From Rhodosorus marinus CCMP1338 (taxonomy: Eukaryota; Plantae; Rhodophyta): DNA of 64,000 nucleotides. The DNA is taken from contig JAMWBK010000001.1 in NCBI GenBank assembly GCA_029953675.1, forward strand, positions 3,534,001-3,598,000. The letters run 5' to 3'. Made by a program: the position numbers and the translations under genes. The notes under the pieces are model-generated. The model had not been told where the DNA came from, ran no database searches, and saw nothing but the letters and a program-made list of their open reading frames with translations. Of this stretch, positions 17,400 to 56,080 are shown piece after piece. Positions within the stretch are counted from its first letter, which is position 1. Every line of letters begins with the position of its first letter.

Positions 17400-17557
17400 T
17401 GTAAATCTTAATCTCTTAATCAGATATCTGAACGAGGTGCTTGACCTGGAGCGGGATCTAATCCACTGTAAAAGGTCTCCAATGACTAGGACCGCGGCGA
17501 TGAAACCCACTGACTCTATGGCAAAGGCAGTCCAAATCAGACGCAGGGATGAAACCC
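17400..17557 (-). repeat. Dispersed repeat B, homologous to 39781-39935 (+)
   Basis: Visual alignment, e.g. TTTGGA..GCCATAGAGTCAGTGGGTTTCATC..GTCATTGGAGACCTTTTA vs TTTGGA..GGCATAGAGTCAGTGGGGGTTCATC..GTCATTGAAGACCTTTTA. Confidence 0.75.
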
Positions 17558-26903: not shown

Positions 26904-27157
26904 TTCAGAGCCTGTCTACACTGAGGAGCGGAAAAGGAGACGCTGAAGACATCGCGTCCAACAACAGAGCAGCGTTCAAACGCCGGAGATAGTCAGCGGC
27001 AGCTCCGTGGACGAGGCTGTCAAGAAGGCCTGAGGGAATTGCGAAAAACACGACCAAGTCGGCGAGAAGCAACACTGTCTAAAGGACCAAAGCACTCGAT
27101 GATCCAGCGGTATGAACTGATGAGATAGCGTCGAGTCCCGAAAGGTTGGATAATCAT
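26904..27157 (+). repeat. Dispersed repeat A, homologous to 39186-39441
   Basis: Shared blocks TTCAGAGCCT.TCTAC.CTGAGGAG..GAAAAGGAGACGCTGA, GCGAAAAACACGAC, GCGAGAAGCAACAC, CCAAAGCACTC.ATGATC, GAGTCCC.A.GGTTGGAT. Confidence 0.8.
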
Positions 27158-30087: not shown

Positions 30088-30502
30088 TAAAAAGTGTTAA
30101 AAGAGTGTGAAAGAGTGTTGAAAGAGTGTGAAAGAGTGTGAAAGAGTGTGAAAGAGTGTTAAAAGAGTGTGAAAGAGTGTTAAAAGAGTGTGAAAGAGTG
30201 TTAAAGAGTGTTGAAGAGTGTAAAAAGTGTAAAAAGTGTAAAACGCGAAAAAAGTGTAAAACGTGCAAAACGTGTAAAACGTGTGATACGTTTAAAACGT
30301 GTAAAACGTGTAAAACGTGTAAAATGTGTAAAATGTGTAGAACGTGTAAAATGTGTAGAACGTGTAAAATGTGTAAAATGCGTGAAATGTGTAAATGTGT
30401 AACATGTGTAAAATGTGTAAAATGTGTAGAACGTTTAAAAAGTGTAGAAAGTGTAAAATGTGTAAAATGTGTAAAATGTGTAAAATGTGTAAGAGAGTGT
30501 TA
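30088..30502 (+). repeat. ~415-bp low-complexity minisatellite (AAAGAGTGTG-like units grading into AAAACGTGT/AAAATGTGT 9-mers)
   Basis: Read directly; generates the spurious ECERV/CKTCKM ORFs. Confidence 0.92.
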
Positions 30503-30873
30503 AATTCTCAAGAGGGTAACACACAAAACTGGGTGTGTCCCGCCCCCTTGATGGGAACTATGGGATCGTCCCTCTAGTAGAACGTAAGTCGCACAACCCA
30601 TCAGAGTTTTCTAACGCATCGATGAGTTCTTTATTCCGTCTTGAAAGGGGAGTTCCTTATTGAAGCGGTCTAGGTTCCAACTCTTTGGACGGATCCACAA
30701 TCCTAGATTAAACTAGTTGGTTTCTTAGTTTGTTAGAGACGACCGAGACTCTGGATGATTCAGCTCTGTGCTAAGACCTCCACAGGTGTTCAGAAAGCAA
30801 ACCAAAAATAACTAATTGACTTTCGACGTTGACTAATCGGCTACTCGAGATGTAGAATCTCTCATCATGTCGT

Positions 30874-34820: not shown

Positions 34821-35291
34821 GGGGGGGAGAGACCGGTCAAGGCTGTTCGCGGAGCAAATCTCCCGAAGCCAGCGAGAACCAACGGAATCCATAAACCCAC
34901 AACACTCAATAACCGGGGGATTGTTTTTGGAGTTTGGTCTACCTCTCCATAGCCTTCATTCGGCAGCTACCTGAATGAATTTGCTCACCTACCGCAGAGC
35001 AACTAATGTCACTCAAGGGGAGAGACGTTGTTGAAGGGCGTCCGCGGAACAAATGACGAAGCCAAGCCAACTAGAACCAGCGGAATCCATAAACCCAACA
35101 CGTTCAATAACAAGAGGATTGATATGGAAGTATGGTCTACCTCTCCCGCGGGGGGGAGGGGGGAAGAGACAGACAGTCAAAGGTGTTCGCGAAACGACTC
35201 TCCCGAAGCCAGCGAGAACCAACTGAACCCATGAACCCATAAAGCACTCAATAACTAGAGGATTGTTTATGGAGGTTGGGTCCACCTCTCC
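34821..35291 (+). repeat. Three diverged ~125-140-bp direct repeats
   Basis: Units at ~34821-34948, 35017-35146 and ~35150-35291. Each runs GGGG(A)AGAGAC..GAAGCCA..GAACCA..CCATAAA..TCAATAAC..GGATTG..GGTC(T/C)ACCTCTCC. Confidence 0.85.
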
Positions 35292-35656
35292 CTCCCCACC
35301 CACACCAACCTCCCTTATTCCCCTTGCAAGGAGTCGCGGGAAATATTTCATGCGGACGCCATTTTTGTTTATGGTGACAATAAAGCTGAGCATAGTACAA
35401 GTTTCCTTTTTTTCCCAGGACTTAGAATTTGCCTCCTTACCCGCGCTCCCTCCACCTGTAAGGACTATGATCTCATTCCGTTGTCAGTCGGGCAAGGCCC
35501 AAAAGGCGTCTCGGGACTTTTTAAACAGAAATTCAATCTTGAGGTAATCGGGTTTGAGACAGGCTGTCCTATACTCACCTGAATTTGTTTGGAGCCGGTC
35601 CCACACCACCCGGGCGGAGGTAAGTACATGACATATCTATGCGGTAGAGCTGCTTT

Positions 35657-36007: not shown

Positions 36008-37107
36008 GCTTGTTGGACGCGCGCCGCCAGCTGCTGCTTCAACCCTCTGACCGTCGCTCCGCTCTGAATAGCTTGACAGGGGTTTAACGGATAAGCGACA
36101 GATAATTCGGTGAGTCCCAGCGCGAAGGGTATGTGAACGGGTAGCCTTAGCCTTTCGATATCCTTAGTATCAAATTGTCTTCTTCATCCTCACCCATTTC
36201 TGCTTGATAAACTCTGTTCCAACAGTTGGTGGATTCCTAGCAGTTTTAGCCTTCAGCTAAAAAAAAGGGAGGAAGAAAGGAAAGCATATGAGGATGCCAA
36301 CTTTCAACAGGTTATGAGCCCATATACTCTAGTTGTGAACTAGGCACCTCGTACTCGACCAGTGCAAATAGCTTGAGCTACGAGTAGGGTTGTCATAAAC
36401 TGTCCGATAAATTTTCAACTCGGGAAAATGTTGCAAAACAGTAGAAATTTATCGGGTATCTTATTGAAGCTCTTAAAAGGCAGAGGTCCAATGACTGTGT
36501 AGTCCGCTTTGAACACTATCATTTAGTGAATGAATAATGATTACTTCTGAAATCGACAGGCTGTCATAACCTTGGCTGTAATTGTGAGGTCTCAGCCTTC
36601 CAACCTTCCGGCAATATCCGGCTGAGCTAGATTATGCTCGGGCTTTGCCAGAATCTATGGAGGTATATCACTTAATTTTAGTCTCGGCGGTATTGCACAT
36701 CCCGATGAAGTAAGGGTATATCCGATAAATACGATGGAATCCACGATACTTTTATTGGATCTTTTCGTCTAACTAACCCCAGCACAAAGAGTTGCTTGAC
36801 AAGTCCAAAAAAATTTTCCCCCTGACCCCTCTTTATTAGGCCCTATCATATTCTACTCCGTCCTAGCCTATTTATACCCTCAGACTAGGCCTCTACATAT
36901 CTCTCATCTAGACACAGTGCTATTTTTGGTAGCCATGTATGTTCTATTTTTGGTGTCGCAGTTGGCTACAGTTACGCCTTGGACTCGCCTCGCCTGACAT
37001 CTCCCTGGCTTACTCCATTGTCAGCCAGGCCCTGATGGTGTCGTTCTGTCCGGCTACAACAGTTCGCCAACACTTTCGAGCTTCGCTTGAAGGTGTTGAA
37101 ATTTTGA

Positions 37108-37896
37108 GAGTGTTGTAGAACATGACGTGCGTCTGAAGGATTTCGCGCTACCGTCAGTGTTCACCGGGGATCAGGATTCGTTCCGATCCTTCCGGAATTG
37201 GAGACACCAGGTAGAGTGCTACCTGACCGTCAAAGGTCTCAGGGATGTAATCGACAACCCGATAGACGCGACGGAAGCGGAGAGACAGTATGTCTCTGCG
37301 GTGTTCTCCAGAGTGCTGGATGGGCCGGCGCTGGACACAGCCTTTGCCTCTTCGAGAGAGGCAGCGCCAGAGCAGGTATGGGCGGCGCTTCGGGCTAGAT
37401 ATGAGCCCTCCTCCCGCGAGACGGCTGACAGCGTATGGGGCAAGGTGTATCGGCGCGAGATGCACACCAACGAGTCGCCACGGTCTCTGGTGAACTGGCT
37501 ACAAACCCAGTTTGCAGAGATCGTGGCGACTCGTTGGTGTGCATCTCGCGCCGATACACCTTGCCCCATACGCTGTCAGCCGTCTCGCGGGAGGAGGGCT
37601 CATATCTAGCCCGAAGCGCCGCCCATACCTGCTCTGGCGCTGCCTCTCTCGAAGAGGCAAAGGCTGTGTCCAGCGCCGGCCCATCCAGCACTCTGGAGAA
37701 CACCGCAGAGACATACTGTCTCTCCGCTTCCGTCGCGTCTATCGGGTTGTCGATTACATCCCTGAGACCTTTGACGGTCAGGTAGCACTCTACCTGGTGT
37801 CTCCAATTCCGGAAGGATCGGAACGAATCCTGATCCCCGGTGAACACTGACGGTAGCGCGAAATCCTTCAGACGCACGTCATGTTCTACAACACTC
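37108..37896. repeat. 375-bp inverted repeat (37108-37482 / 37522-37896), 39-nt spacer
   Basis: Mirror-image ORFs with identical translations (37198..37398+ and 37606..37806-); coordinate sums are symmetric (75004). Confidence 0.95.
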
Positions 37897-37916
37897 CCCC
37901 TCGTCCTCGCCGCCAT
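37522..37916 (-). pseudogene. Truncated copia gag (ATG at 37916)
   Basis: MAARTRG..PSVFTGD..FRNWRHQVECYL..KGL.DVI..VWAALRARYEPSS..M..NES, matching the Retrotran_gag_2 pattern. Confidence 0.8.
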
Positions 37917-37984
37917 CCTAAGGCAACACCACGCACAATCCCTAATACCCGTAAAAACGCACCCAGCAGTTCTTACAAAATCGC

Positions 37985-38001
37985 ACCAAGCGATGAGACC
38001 A
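37985..38001 (-). other. Putative primer-binding site TGGTCTCATCGCTTGG
   Basis: TGG start directly after the LTR-terminal ..TTTCAACA; cognate tRNA not identified. Confidence 0.6.
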
Positions 38002-38305
38002 TGTTGAAATTTTCCAGGATTCCCAACCTTGACCAAAGTCCCGTCAGCCAGACTTCGATGCTTTCTTTATTGGTTTCCCTGACCCTTCCTTGTGTTCGAT
38101 ATCTACCACTTAAGTATCCTACTATACTGTGGGGAAGATCGATACCTTGTACTGTTCAAACTACTTCAAATGTTTGAACCTCTATATGGTTTGTCTACCG
38201 TATACTGTTCGCACATCGGTCCTACCGTATATGTGACCGTGTGTGAATCATCCTTTTAGATGCTGAGAGCGTATCGTCACCGTTCATCGCGTGACCGTTT
38301 CAACA
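38002..38305 (-). repeat. 304-bp LTR
   Basis: TGTTGAAA...TTTCAACA inverted termini, TACTTAAG TATA-like motif, AATAAA. Confidence 0.8.
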
Positions 38306-39185
38306 GAAGGTAGAGAAGAAAACAAGTAAGGAAGAAGAACCAGAGTTAGAAAAGGAAAGTTAGTTTTGGGATAAACTACCTAATTAGGGAGTAATTAGGA
38401 GGAAGCAAACCTTGAATTCTGGAATAATTGAGGCCGTGCTACCGGTGGAGAGCCAGGGTTTGCTAATAGTATTATCGGCCGAAATATTTCTTAATTATTT
38501 TCTATCCCAGTCTACTAAGTTTATATCGGACGGAAATCCTCAGCAAGTGGGGTCAATTGTTTCCGAATGGGGGTCCGACAAACGTTTATCGGACGCAATC
38601 GAACGATTAATTTTTTTTATCGGATGGACATGATAGCCCTAGTTAGAGCCAGTAATTCTATATCTAGTACTGACTAATCAAAAGGACGCGAAGTGTGAGG
38701 GTGGAATTCTTGTTTAGGGGGTAAACTTTAAGGTTTTGAGCCGTTTTCACTTCGCTGTGTGTTTCGCGCTCCTGATCGAGGCTGAGCACGTCGGTGTGAC
38801 TACTGATAGCACCTAAGGAAGTGCTGGATATTGTCGCTACAATAGTAAGAGAACTCTGGAGTGCACGGTTGGATAATGTCCAGCGCTTTTGCCTGATATA
38901 GAATGCCCGATTGGAACTCAAGAGTGTCAAGTGAGGACAAATGTGTGTGCAAGTCCAAGAGAATACGCAAACGGTCATTAAGCTTAAGGATAGCGATAGA
39001 TCTACTGGTGTTAGAAGCAGATCTTCCCCACAGAAAGGATCAGGGATATTAGTGAGCTACAGGGTTTAGAGTTCACTGGGAAGTAGAAGATAGAACAAGG
39101 CATAAGAGGGAATACAATAAAAGCACGGGTTTACTTGGGTTTGGATTAAGGCCAAACCCAAGTAAATTTTATGAAGACCAGTTTG

Positions 39186-39995
39186 TTCAGAGCCTATCTA
39201 CCCTGAGGAGGTGAAAAGGAGACGCTGATGACGCGCGGCCAAGAAAAGAGCATCATTCGGACGACAGCGAGCCAGAGAGCCAAATACAGCTCCGTGAAGA
39301 AGCTGTCAATACGGCCGAGGGCATGGCGAAAAACACGACGAATCCAGCGAGAAGCAACACAGCCTAAAAAGCCAAAGCACTCCATGATCAGTAGTGCAAA
39401 CTGATGAGACAGAGCCGAGTCCCAAGGGTTGGATGAGTCATCGCCTCATCGTACTATGCTTCAGCTGTCGATTGAACCAGCGGCGGCACCACGACGTTGT
39501 GCAGACGTAGGAAGATATCGCGCAGCCTGGGGACAAGGAATAGACTAGTCAAGATACTCACTCCTGCGAGCAGCCAAGTCAGTGACCACCAAATAGCGCC
39601 TCGCACAGGACAACAAGTGTCTCGTAAATGAGCTTCACGGACCTGAAATACAGGCAAAGGGACCTCGTAGTCCACCTAGCGATCAGTATCAAGCGCCTGC
39701 GACCGTAGATATCGAAATAAAAGCCGGTTTATACGCGCTTGGCGACGCGTACGGGCCGACACGCCTTGCCGCCCCGCAAAGGTTTTACCCCCGCGTCTAA
39801 TTTGGATTCCCCTTGGCATAGAGTCAGTGGGGGTTCATCCCCAAGGTCTTTGTCATTGAAGACCTTTTAGGGTGGTCATATCTTGCTCTAGGTCAAATAC
39901 CTTTGTTCGTAGGATTTTGAGAGATGAAGATCTACGGATAAAAAAGGCTACGGAAAGAATACCCGCAACCATATGTCCCAACCATGTCCCATCCA
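39186..39995 (+). mobile_element. Composite repeat carrying dispersed repeats A (39186-39441) and B (39781-39935) plus TGTCCCA subterminal repeats
   Basis: Matches to 26904-27157 and 17400-17557; TGTCCCA repeats follow block B at both loci. Confidence 0.55.
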
Positions 39996-55742: not shown

Positions 55743-56080
55743 GGAGCAACAGATATAACTGCGCGAACGAGGATGGAAGAGACATCAGTACTATTTGAGG
55801 AGAGTAGAAGGGTCGACGAGGGAGGTAGGGAAGGAGACGGAGAGCTGAGGGGAAACGACGAGCAACAGATCTCACTGCGGAGGAGGATGGAAGTGACGAT
55901 TACTGTTTGAGGAGGGTAGAAGGATCGATGAGGGAGGCGAGGAAGAGGACGGAGTCCTGACGGGGAAGGACGAGCAACAGATATCCCTGCGGAGGAGGAT
56001 GGAAGAGATGATTACTGTTTGAGGAGAGTAGAAGGATTGGCGAGGGAGGCGGTGAAGAAGATTGTGAGCTGAAAGGGGGG
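55743..56080 (+). repeat. Three ~112-117-bp purine-rich tandem repeats directly upstream of the PPR ATG
   Basis: GAGCAACAGAT..GAGGATGGAAG..TTTGAGGAG.GTAGAAGG recurs at 55743, 55860 and 55972. Confidence 0.85.

Follow-up and report, generated by a model that had tools for sequence, protein, structure and literature searches.

The nuclear genome of the red alga Rhodosorus marinus CCMP1338 holds a dead, rearranged copy of an LTR retrotransposon, without gag-pol coding capacity, whose complete 5' LTR, primer-binding site (PBS) and gag start face a long palindrome made of its own gag. The copy lies at positions 37089-38310 of the window, the stretch of 64,000 nucleotides that was analysed, which belongs to contig JAMWBK010000001.1 of assembly GCA_029953675.1. 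Only nt 1-435 of gag remain, the polypurine tract and pol are missing, and the 3' LTR is reduced to 12 nt. The arrangement is probably the outcome of a single compound event that struck one integrated copy of a copia-like element. Because an intact LTR faces a stem of about 381 bp and no 3' LTR terminator follows, any RNA initiated in the LTR would be a long hairpin with read-out into the left flank, and the locus is a candidate, not a demonstrated, member of the type represented by Mu killer in maize. Its features, in window coordinates with the strand in brackets, are the following.

37089-37093 (no strand): left target-site duplication GAAGG, abutting the LTR-end remnant
37094-37105 (minus): 3' LTR remnant, its final 12 nt, which read AAAATTTCAACA in minus-strand orientation, a 12/12 match to 38013-38002
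37106-37107 (no strand): junction 1, a 2-nt filler (GA) that separates the LTR remnant from gag nt 21
37108-37489 (plus): left arm, gag nt 21-402 in sense, inverted with respect to the LTR, homologous to positions 138-519 of the related sequence L001
37490-37514 (plus): spacer, gag nt 403-427 in native form, running on from the left arm
37515-37522 (plus): junction 2, the turn-back point in native gag nt 428-435, placed by the mismatch map
37515-37896 (minus): right arm, gag nt 21-402 in sense, homologous to L001, running on into the gag start, leader, PBS and LTR
37897-37916 (minus): first 20 nt of gag, with the ATG at 37916-37914, present on the LTR side only
37917-37979 (minus): 63-nt leader with a second PBS-like motif, GCTGGGTGCG, identified by aligning it to the L001 and L003 leaders
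37980-38001 (minus): PBS, TGGTCTCATCGCTTGGTGCGAT, immediately after the CA of the LTR
38002-38305 (minus): complete 5' LTR of 304 bp, delimited by the target-site duplication on one side and the PBS on the other
38306-38310 (no strand): right target-site duplication GAAGG, a direct repeat of 37089-37093

Element boundaries and integration

The LTR, the only full one present, runs from TG to CA, ends in an 8-bp terminal inverted repeat (TGTTGAAA/TTTCAACA) and contains an AATAAA at 38071-38066. The PBS starts with TGG directly after it, as is expected of a PBS following a 5' LTR, and 20 of its 22 positions are invariant across the alignment of the window with L001 and L003; no tRNA genes were found within the window, and tRNA and Rfam scans around the locus were empty. 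In alignments, the gag ATG coincides with the L001, L003 and L005 start codons, and the positions of PBS and ATG are kept in related transcript contigs. A preliminary description of this DNA had placed an LTR at 38305-38002, a PBS and a gag start at 37916, all aimed into the repeat, and this part of it is borne out; the GAAGG duplication, the LTR-end remnant and the lack of a second LTR or gag copy in the window are new.

The GAAGG duplication falls within the 4-6 bp that flanking target-site duplications span, GAGGG not being involved. Next to its left copy, plus-strand positions 37094-37105 read TGTTGAAATTTT, the exact reverse complement of the final 12 nt of the LTR, and duplication and terminus together amount to 17 specified bases at the expected places. 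Since both element termini and the duplication survive, integrase must have inserted a two-ended element here, and since the left end retains the last 12 nt of the LTR, this was one integrated element. Two head-to-head or nested insertions were rejected as a source of the palindrome: there is a single pair of target-site duplications, gag is joined to gag through a microhomology with no LTR ends between, and the lack of any other copy of the LTR or gag within the 64-kb window also argues against nesting.

That the left flank might be a diverged LTR belonging to this element was also considered and dismissed, its local alignment being no better than that of shuffled sequences. A segment of this flank ('X', 36917-37073) also adjoins a gag fragment in the unrelated contig L005, an observation that the model preferred below leaves unexplained.

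The palindrome and its junctions

The core of the palindrome consists of two perfectly complementary arms of 375 bp (37108-37482 against 37522-37896, no mismatches). Beyond the core come one G/T mismatch (G at 37483, T at 37521) and six further paired bases (TCTCTG at 37484-37489, CAGAGA at 37515-37520), giving full arms of 382 bp that carry a single mismatch (99.7% identity) and flank a 25-nt centre at 37490-37514. The inverted gag duplication of 375 bp with a 39-nt spacer reported earlier corresponds to the strictly perfect part of these arms. It is the one long palindrome in the 64-kb window, all others being at most 49 nt and imperfect.

The centre is native gag, encoding ...VNWLQTQF...: homology of the plus strand to L001 extends through it as far as 37521, and L001, P0002 and P0004 encode (L/H)(V/I)NWL.....(E/G)I in this region. 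The native reading ...QFAEI stops at junction 2, after which the sequence is the reverse complement of gag from nt 394 downward. At the turn, CAGAGATC pairs with GGTCTCTG at 37482-37489 in seven of eight positions, the exception being T:G at 37521/37483, and the mismatched T is retained in the plus strand. A turn at a native 8-nt inverted microhomology (7/8) points to template switching, not to two insertions. The placement of junction 2 hinges on the native sequence, as GAGATC followed by GTGGCGACTC would shift it. A later substitution in an 8-nt repeat that was perfect at the outset could also explain the mismatch, and the switch would then be ambiguous in direction. At junction 1 the GA matches neither source, differing both from the continuation of the LTR (CC) and from native gag as it stands in the right arm (GG).

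Could the palindrome be a product of the assembly? NextDenovo was used to assemble the genome from ONT GridION data, and Pilon was then run three times (PMC10250338); fold-back chimeric Nanopore reads or a mis-join at a repeat, with arms equalised by short-read polishing, would account for such a structure. However, both sides are flanked by unique sequence, the junctions are biological in character (the target-site duplication, the precise end of an LTR, and a microhomology in which one mismatch persists), and this is the sole such structure in 64 kb. Fold-back read artefacts, moreover, usually invert a whole read rather than 382 bp within a contig, and an artefactual origin appears very improbable. 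The polishing does bear on age. The arms had earlier been taken to reflect recent origin or homogenisation, which is reasonable, but Pilon polishing of a Nanopore assembly could also equalise them (PMC10250338), and because short reads cannot tell the arms apart, their perfect identity is weak evidence of youth. The rearranged element is probably young.

Relatives and family assignment

The relatives recovered are fragments, 79-88% identical and from other strains or data sets. An exhaustive HMMER search of 1.84 billion protein representatives gave eight matches, all of at most 218 aa, and word-index protein searches gave two matches and one match; metagenome scans for family members found nothing, and a full-length member was recovered neither from metagenomes nor from protein collections. 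Look-ups of contigs for P0002, P0007, P0008 or the hairpin ORF returned none, and an amino-acid transporter was the sole match in an exact protein look-up of the window's ORFs. Related elements are nevertheless transcribed in Rhodosorus transcriptome assemblies, where their contigs begin within the corresponding part of the LTR, 47-71 nt upstream of the PBS.

A CCHC knuckle and a DSGATDH protease motif in the gag frame make it plausible that the family is copia-like: L003 and P0010 carry CFGCRKxGHIRAEC and (I/V)LDSGATDH in a single frame with gag, and zf-CCHC scores 21.1 bits against a cut-off of 20.8. Two copia-associated Pfam models gave matches below their cut-offs, Pol_BBD on a relative (E = 0.0046, the match ending at the contig end) and DUF4219 on the gag of the window (E = 0.097), for which Pfam returned no significant family; no Retrotran_gag or UBN2 match turned up. 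The defining domain order of Ty1/copia elements is gag-PR-INT-RT-RNaseH, with integrase before reverse transcriptase (RT). The copia label given earlier agrees with the single-frame gag, CCHC and DSGATDH and with the sub-threshold Pol_BBD and DUF4219 matches, but that order was not recovered, and neither integrase nor RT of the family was found among the relatives.

Origin of the rearrangement

The junctions suggest a model whereby the integrated element would have lost everything from gag nt 436 onward except the final 12 nt of the 3' LTR and received inverted gag nt 21-435 in its place. A nascent plus strand would have begun with the first 12 nt of the 3' LTR and then, at gag nt 21, have moved over to the other strand as its template, leaving the 2-nt filler of junction 1; copying would have gone on to gag nt 435, followed by a switch back via CAGAGATC/GGTCTCTG at junction 2, and synthesis would have been completed through gag, leader, PBS and 5' LTR. 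Such an event would belong with the template switches of replication or repair, of the FoSTeS/MMBIR or gap-repair kind.

Other routes to a palindrome fit less well. A simple snap-back self-copy was rejected, as the LTR-side half holds gag nt 1-20, leader, PBS and LTR that are absent from the other half; because the left arm is without them, a snapped-back strand cannot make the right side. A full palindromic dimer followed by deletion, in which the left end would be the start of U3, is disfavoured, the left terminus matching the U5 end over 12 nt and the U3 start over 8 nt.

The timing of the event is a separate matter. It most likely followed integration, a reading we hold as somewhat the better one, the cDNA stage before integration being less likely. 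The complete LTR includes the part that lies upstream of the relatives' transcript starts, so normal reverse transcription, with polypurine tract and 3' LTR in place, must have preceded their loss; the established replication scheme of LTR retroelements is the basis for this conclusion. An alternative, which we regard as unlikely, is that, while reverse transcription was under way or had just ended, RT switched templates or folded back where it paused in gag, and that the aberrant cDNA was then integrated. Both integrase-recognised termini (TG...CA) and a clean target-site duplication are kept, and the retained 12 nt of the U5 end are also the first 12 nt of minus-strand DNA; as a breakpoint this leftover is unlikely under random deletion, which might indicate an origin at the cDNA level or linked to integrase. 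The turn, furthermore, sits at a small native stem (TCTCTG...CAGAGA), L001, the closest relative, has a 41-nt inverted repeat of its own that begins at the equivalent base, and the relatives diverge entirely past the turn point. This divergence beyond '...QFAEI' may, however, just reflect a poorly conserved gag linker, and joining sense gag DNA to the 5' end of the minus strand requires an antisense template inside the particle. The rearranged molecule has no polypurine tract, U3 or R from which its complete 5' LTR could have been made, so a normal full-length cDNA must have come first. As for the rearranged copy itself, we consider the simplest reading to be that the locus is an unselected by-product of the event.

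A predicted hairpin transcript and its possible roles

An RNA running from inside the LTR to 37094 is predicted to fold at -939 kcal/mol, against -364 +/- 10 for shuffled sequences (z = -57), with a stem of about 381 bp, in line with the earlier expectation that a transcript from the LTR would form about 375 bp of double-stranded RNA. Could such an RNA silence the family? The steps differ in how far they can be credited. The locus might, though less likely than not, be a source of siRNAs, provided that the LTR fires and that Dicer and Argonaute are present in the alga; a role as trans-silencer, which would require intact relatives, is improbable.

The full version of the idea is a self-promoted hairpin locus that makes siRNAs against the 5' region of gag and keeps a copia-like family of a red alga in check, and it too strikes us as improbable. 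In this functional 'copia killer', the LTR would drive the palindrome RNA, Dicer would cut it into siRNAs against gag nt 21-402, and Argonaute would use these to silence full-length copies in trans, as Mu killer does with MuDR. The LTR, PBS and gag start are intact and directed at a perfect long stem, and relatives are transcribed from within their own LTRs. The principle is established for Mu killer (PMC3440606) and has been considered for the Arabidopsis element EVD (PMC11624286). The Dicer-like (DCL) and Argonaute (AGO) machinery is reported in non-cyanidiophyte red algae, being present in Porphyridiophyceae, Bangiophyceae and Florideophyceae and lost only in Cyanidiophyceae (PMC9812998, PMC8304369, PMC12026948), although the literature yielded no paper connecting Rhodosorus and Argonaute and nothing for Stylonematophyceae. 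RNA-seq of R. marinus exists (PMC10250338). Against a functional silencer, protein collections hold no transcript or protein identical to this copy, the relatives found are the diverged fragments described above and no intact target is among them, and the locus bears no sign of selection, with its zero divergence and accidental-looking deletion.

An effect through protein seems exceedingly improbable. From the ATG at 37916 a frame of 173 aa stays open via the arm and spacer into the left arm, and a truncated Gag could in principle disrupt particle assembly of active relatives in the manner of Ty1 copy-number control or Fv1-type restriction. This product would join Gag residues 1-134 to a 39-residue tail that is an accident of reading the antisense arm; its mRNA would be locked in a perfect hairpin, which is unfavourable to translation, and the ORF shows no conservation or annotation in protein collections. 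The known Ty1 inhibitor, moreover, is the C-terminal half of Gag and not the N-terminal one.

If the LTR is active, the locus would be a natural experiment on hairpin small RNAs against retrotransposons in a unicellular red alga. Were the silencer real, it would be the first natural equivalent of Mu killer in which an LTR retrotransposon is the source and its LTR the promoter, and RNAi-based control of transposons would be evidenced for the first time in Stylonematophyceae; if silent, the locus is merely an unusual dead element. Whatever its function, the junctions form a clean single-locus record of two-switch template switching within a mobile element. Fragility is also expected of a perfect 382-bp palindrome whose spacer is 25 nt, and its persistence informs either its age or how well this genome tolerates palindromes.

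Comparison with known systems

FoSTeS/MMBIR, fold-back inversions and polymerase-theta templated insertions form a mechanistic class rather than a family of loci. The locus resembles this class in its deletion with an adjacent inverted duplication, microhomology of 0-8 nt, short filler and turn at a native inverted repeat, the assignment being made here from junction sequence only; polymerase-theta insertions usually measure tens of bases, and the one here about 415. The hpRNA and endo-siRNA loci of Drosophila, mouse oocytes and RNAi-competent budding yeasts are likewise genomic inverted repeats, often derived from transposable elements or pseudogenes, whose transcripts are Dicer substrates. 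They are defined by sequenced small RNAs, the present locus by its DNA sequence.

Rearranged endogenous pararetroviruses and the duplications made by alternative transposition of Ac/Ds are similar in that inverted rearrangements have been read as heritable hairpin-RNA immunity loci, but they come from plants with RNA-directed DNA methylation (RdDM) and arose by recombination of integrated viral fragments or by transposase-mediated alternative transposition (PMC9868043; bioRxiv 10.1101/2020.01.07.897926). In Arabidopsis, an antisense nested insertion of EVD (ATCOPIA93) has been proposed as an LTR-hairpin source and stochastic trigger of silencing, likewise without siRNA production being shown (PMC11624286). 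EVD, of copia type as our element may be, is likewise arranged so that read-through from one LTR would give self-complementary RNA. It differs in resulting from two integrase events, with kilobase spacing and a stem made of LTR, where the present locus has one insertion, an internal rearrangement at microhomology, a stem made of gag and a 25-nt spacer.

Mu killer, reportedly described by Slotkin et al. in 2003/2005, likewise arose naturally when a transposon's 5' portion was duplicated in inverted orientation; the duplicated part takes in the terminal repeat and the beginning of the first gene, and the Mu killer hairpin matches the active element. For Mu killer, siRNAs and heritable trans-silencing have been demonstrated (PMC3440606). 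It derives from a DNA transposon and gives a hairpin RNA of about 4 kb by read-through from a flanking gene, whereas here an LTR retrotransposon contributes arms of about 0.38 kb. Since the LTR lies outside the stem, promoter-directed silencing is not predicted for this locus, and transcription would start from the LTR of the element itself in place of a neighbouring gene.

Structure of the insertion

The rearranged unit is flanked by a GAAGG direct repeat (37089-37093 and 38306-38310), and 37094-37105 matches the final 12 bases of its LTR exactly in reverse complement; both features are absent from the preliminary description. As both LTR-element termini and a 5-bp target-site duplication are present, the unit went in by a single insertion, as a two-ended LTR element. 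The LTR, gag start and 375-bp inverted gag repeat are all present as first described:

38305-38002, minus: LTR, 304 bp, TG...CA ends, 8-bp terminal inverted repeat
38001-37980, minus: primer binding site (PBS) TGGTCTCATCGCTTGGTGCGAT, directly after the LTR
between TGGTCTCATCGCTTGGTGCGAT and the ATG, minus: leader, 63 nt
37916, minus: gag ATG

No second LTR or gag copy was found elsewhere in the 64-kb window. The PBS is partly repeated in the leader on the minus strand, GCTTGGTGCG (37980-38001) being followed about 27 nt downstream by GCTGGGTGCG (37951-37962), and the doubling recurs in the related contigs L001 and L003. Ty1 has extra tRNA-contact boxes, and the leader repeat may be a similar box.

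The arms 37108-37482 and 37522-37896 are complementary without mismatch over 375 bp, in agreement with the earlier account. Past a single mismatch (G 37483 / T 37521) pairing resumes for six bases, which extends the arms to 382 bp and leaves a 25-nt centre. No other inverted repeat longer than 49 nt occurs in the whole 64-kb window. The claim that an LTR transcript would fold on itself agrees with the predicted fold: RNA 38073-37094 forms one unbroken stem at -939 kcal/mol (shuffles -364 +/- 10, z = -57).

Relatives and family assignment

Relatives of the gag N-terminus are rare, with two recovered by word-index search and eight by HMMER run exhaustively over 1.84 billion representatives, and all are at most 218 aa long. 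Related sequences include:

P0002: MMETSP Rhodosorus marinus protein, 80% identity
L001: contig of JGI sample 3300017118, DNA 79-82% identical, in the order U5 end, same PBS, leader, gag
L003/L004 (P0004 family): same PBS, 218-aa gag, CFGCRKPGHIRAEC downstream, then ILDSGATDH

Another related protein, P0010, carries CFGCRKPGHIRAEC and ILDSGATDH in one frame with gag. Among Pfam models, zf-CCHC scores slightly over its cut-off; Pol_BBD and DUF4219, which we take to be copia-associated families, fall under theirs. The earlier assignment to copia is thus softened to "copia-like", which is a reasonable label; copia is defined by integrase preceding RT, and no integrase or RT of the family was recovered. 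The relatives' contigs begin 47-71 nt upstream of the PBS, within the LTR-equivalent segment and downstream of AATAAA, which fits transcription starting in the LTR in related strains, although contig ends are not mapped start sites.

The turn-back point

On the plus strand, homology to L001 (138-551) runs from the left arm through the spacer up to 37521, while right-arm homology ends at 37516. All relatives encode ...(L/H)(V/I)NWL.....(E/G)I, matching the plus-strand reading. This makes the spacer (nt 403-427) native gag that carries on from the left arm without a break, and native gag extends to CAGAGATC at 37515-37522 (nt 428-435). This octamer is complementary at seven of eight positions to GGTCTCTG (37482-37489, nt 395-402); the odd position is the palindrome's sole mismatch, and the T of native GAGATC is kept in the plus strand. 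In the simplest reading, a growing plus strand with CAGAGATC at its 3' end would have re-annealed to GGTCTCTG of a sense strand and been extended. If the native 8-nt repeat was once perfect and the G is a later change, the mismatch gives no switch direction, but that requires a substitution to land by chance within the 8-nt microhomology.

Gag nt 1-20, leader, PBS and LTR occur in the right half only. Since the left half lacks all four, synthesis past the turn must have used a different sense strand as template, and the nascent strand as its own template is ruled out. At the junction on the far left, two unassignable bases (GA) connect the 12-nt remnant of the LTR to gag nt 21.

L001 has an inverted repeat of its own (548-588 / 628-668, 41 nt, 90%), whose first base corresponds to the turn-back point of the window, and another of 61 nt (882-942/975-1035). 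Rearrangement may recur at this site, or L001 may belong to a non-autonomous lineage that carries hairpins.

Origin of the rearrangement

In the established replication scheme of retroelements, producing a complete 5' LTR by reverse transcription needs copying of the RNA's 3' U3-R and polypurine tract. The complete 5' LTR thus means that a normal full-length cDNA must have preceded the loss. We favour a post-integration event with two template switches during replication or repair (of FoSTeS/MMBIR or gap-repair type), in which the plus strand would copy 12 nt of the 3' LTR, switch to the opposite strand to copy gag nt 21 to 435, and return at gag nt 394. Could the rearrangement have arisen in the cDNA, before integration? 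The surviving terminus of merely 12 nt, the equivalent start of the 41-nt repeat in L001 and the full divergence of relatives past ...QFAEI lend this some weight, although the divergence may just reflect a variable gag linker.

NextDenovo was used to assemble the ONT GridION reads, and three rounds of Pilon polishing followed (PMC10250338). Two junctions with biological signatures and unique flanks make an artefact unlikely. Pilon could, however, equalise the arms, so their zero divergence is weak dating evidence. Perfect palindromes of such size with short spacers are unstable, which argues for a recent event. The recent origin or homogenisation first read from identical arms is a reasonable view; the element is rearranged, dead, probably young and copia-like.

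Genomic surroundings

The CCMP1338 nuclear genome (GCA_029953675.1) spans 31 Mb with 15% repeats (PMC10250338). One protein encoded in the window is identical to an NCBI protein from contig JAMWBK010000001.1 of this assembly. Nearby ORFs represent typical genes of eukaryotes (PUF, PPR, multicopper oxidase, Hint/DOMON, PCRF release factor); the annotation has no gene from about 32.8 to 36.4 kb of the window, and the hairpin ORFs are missing from the protein collection. Just left of the target-site duplication, 36917-37073 is about 75% identical to L005:531-662 (Logan contig, SRR32518362), where a truncated gag fragment (nt 1-195) from this group of elements precedes it by about 60 nt, the two being oriented to each other as they are here. 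This non-coding segment, without similarity to the LTR, is thus seen beside gag in two places. Dispersed repeat pairs (39186-39434 with 26904-27151, 39781-39902 with 17435-17556; 77-79% identity) and short tandem repeats (34866-35292) also surround the insertion, so that 33-41 kb has the look of a repeat island poor in genes. Elsewhere, a 9-nt unit (AAACGTGTA / AAATGTGTA variants) is repeated about 40 times at 30178-30537, adjoining the multicopper oxidase gene. One ORF of this red alga (680-2131, plus) has a DOMON domain together with a Hint (hedgehog/intein-type) module, and the PPR-protein ORF is immediately preceded by a 112-bp tandem duplication (55789-56012, 84% identity).

A possible silencing role

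If the LTR fires, the RNA must form a stem over gag nt 21-402, perfectly paired for about 381 bp. The locus has no 3' LTR as terminator, and a further AATAAA on that strand is first reached in the flank (about 36848-36843). DCL and AGO are reported for a number of red algal classes outside Cyanidiophyceae, which has lost them (PMC9812998, PMC8304369, PMC12026948); we found no red algal DCL/AGO literature covering Rhodosorus. Production of any small RNAs from the locus is possible but doubtful, and the full "copia-killer" reading, a fair hypothesis, is very unlikely to hold. The structure is nevertheless real and neatly interpretable, transposon control is unexplored in this lineage, and the test is cheap, RNA-seq of CCMP1338 being available (PMC10250338).

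Seeding of silencing by the hairpin of a rearranged or nested transposon is established for Mu killer (PMC3440606), and hairpin-seeded silencing is also discussed for EVD (PMC11624286), Ac/Ds and endogenous pararetroviruses. Unlike in Mu killer, the LTR itself lies outside the stem, so that small RNAs would target gag mRNA, not the promoter. With hairpin silencing already known from Mu killer, the locus would exemplify a known kind rather than a new principle.
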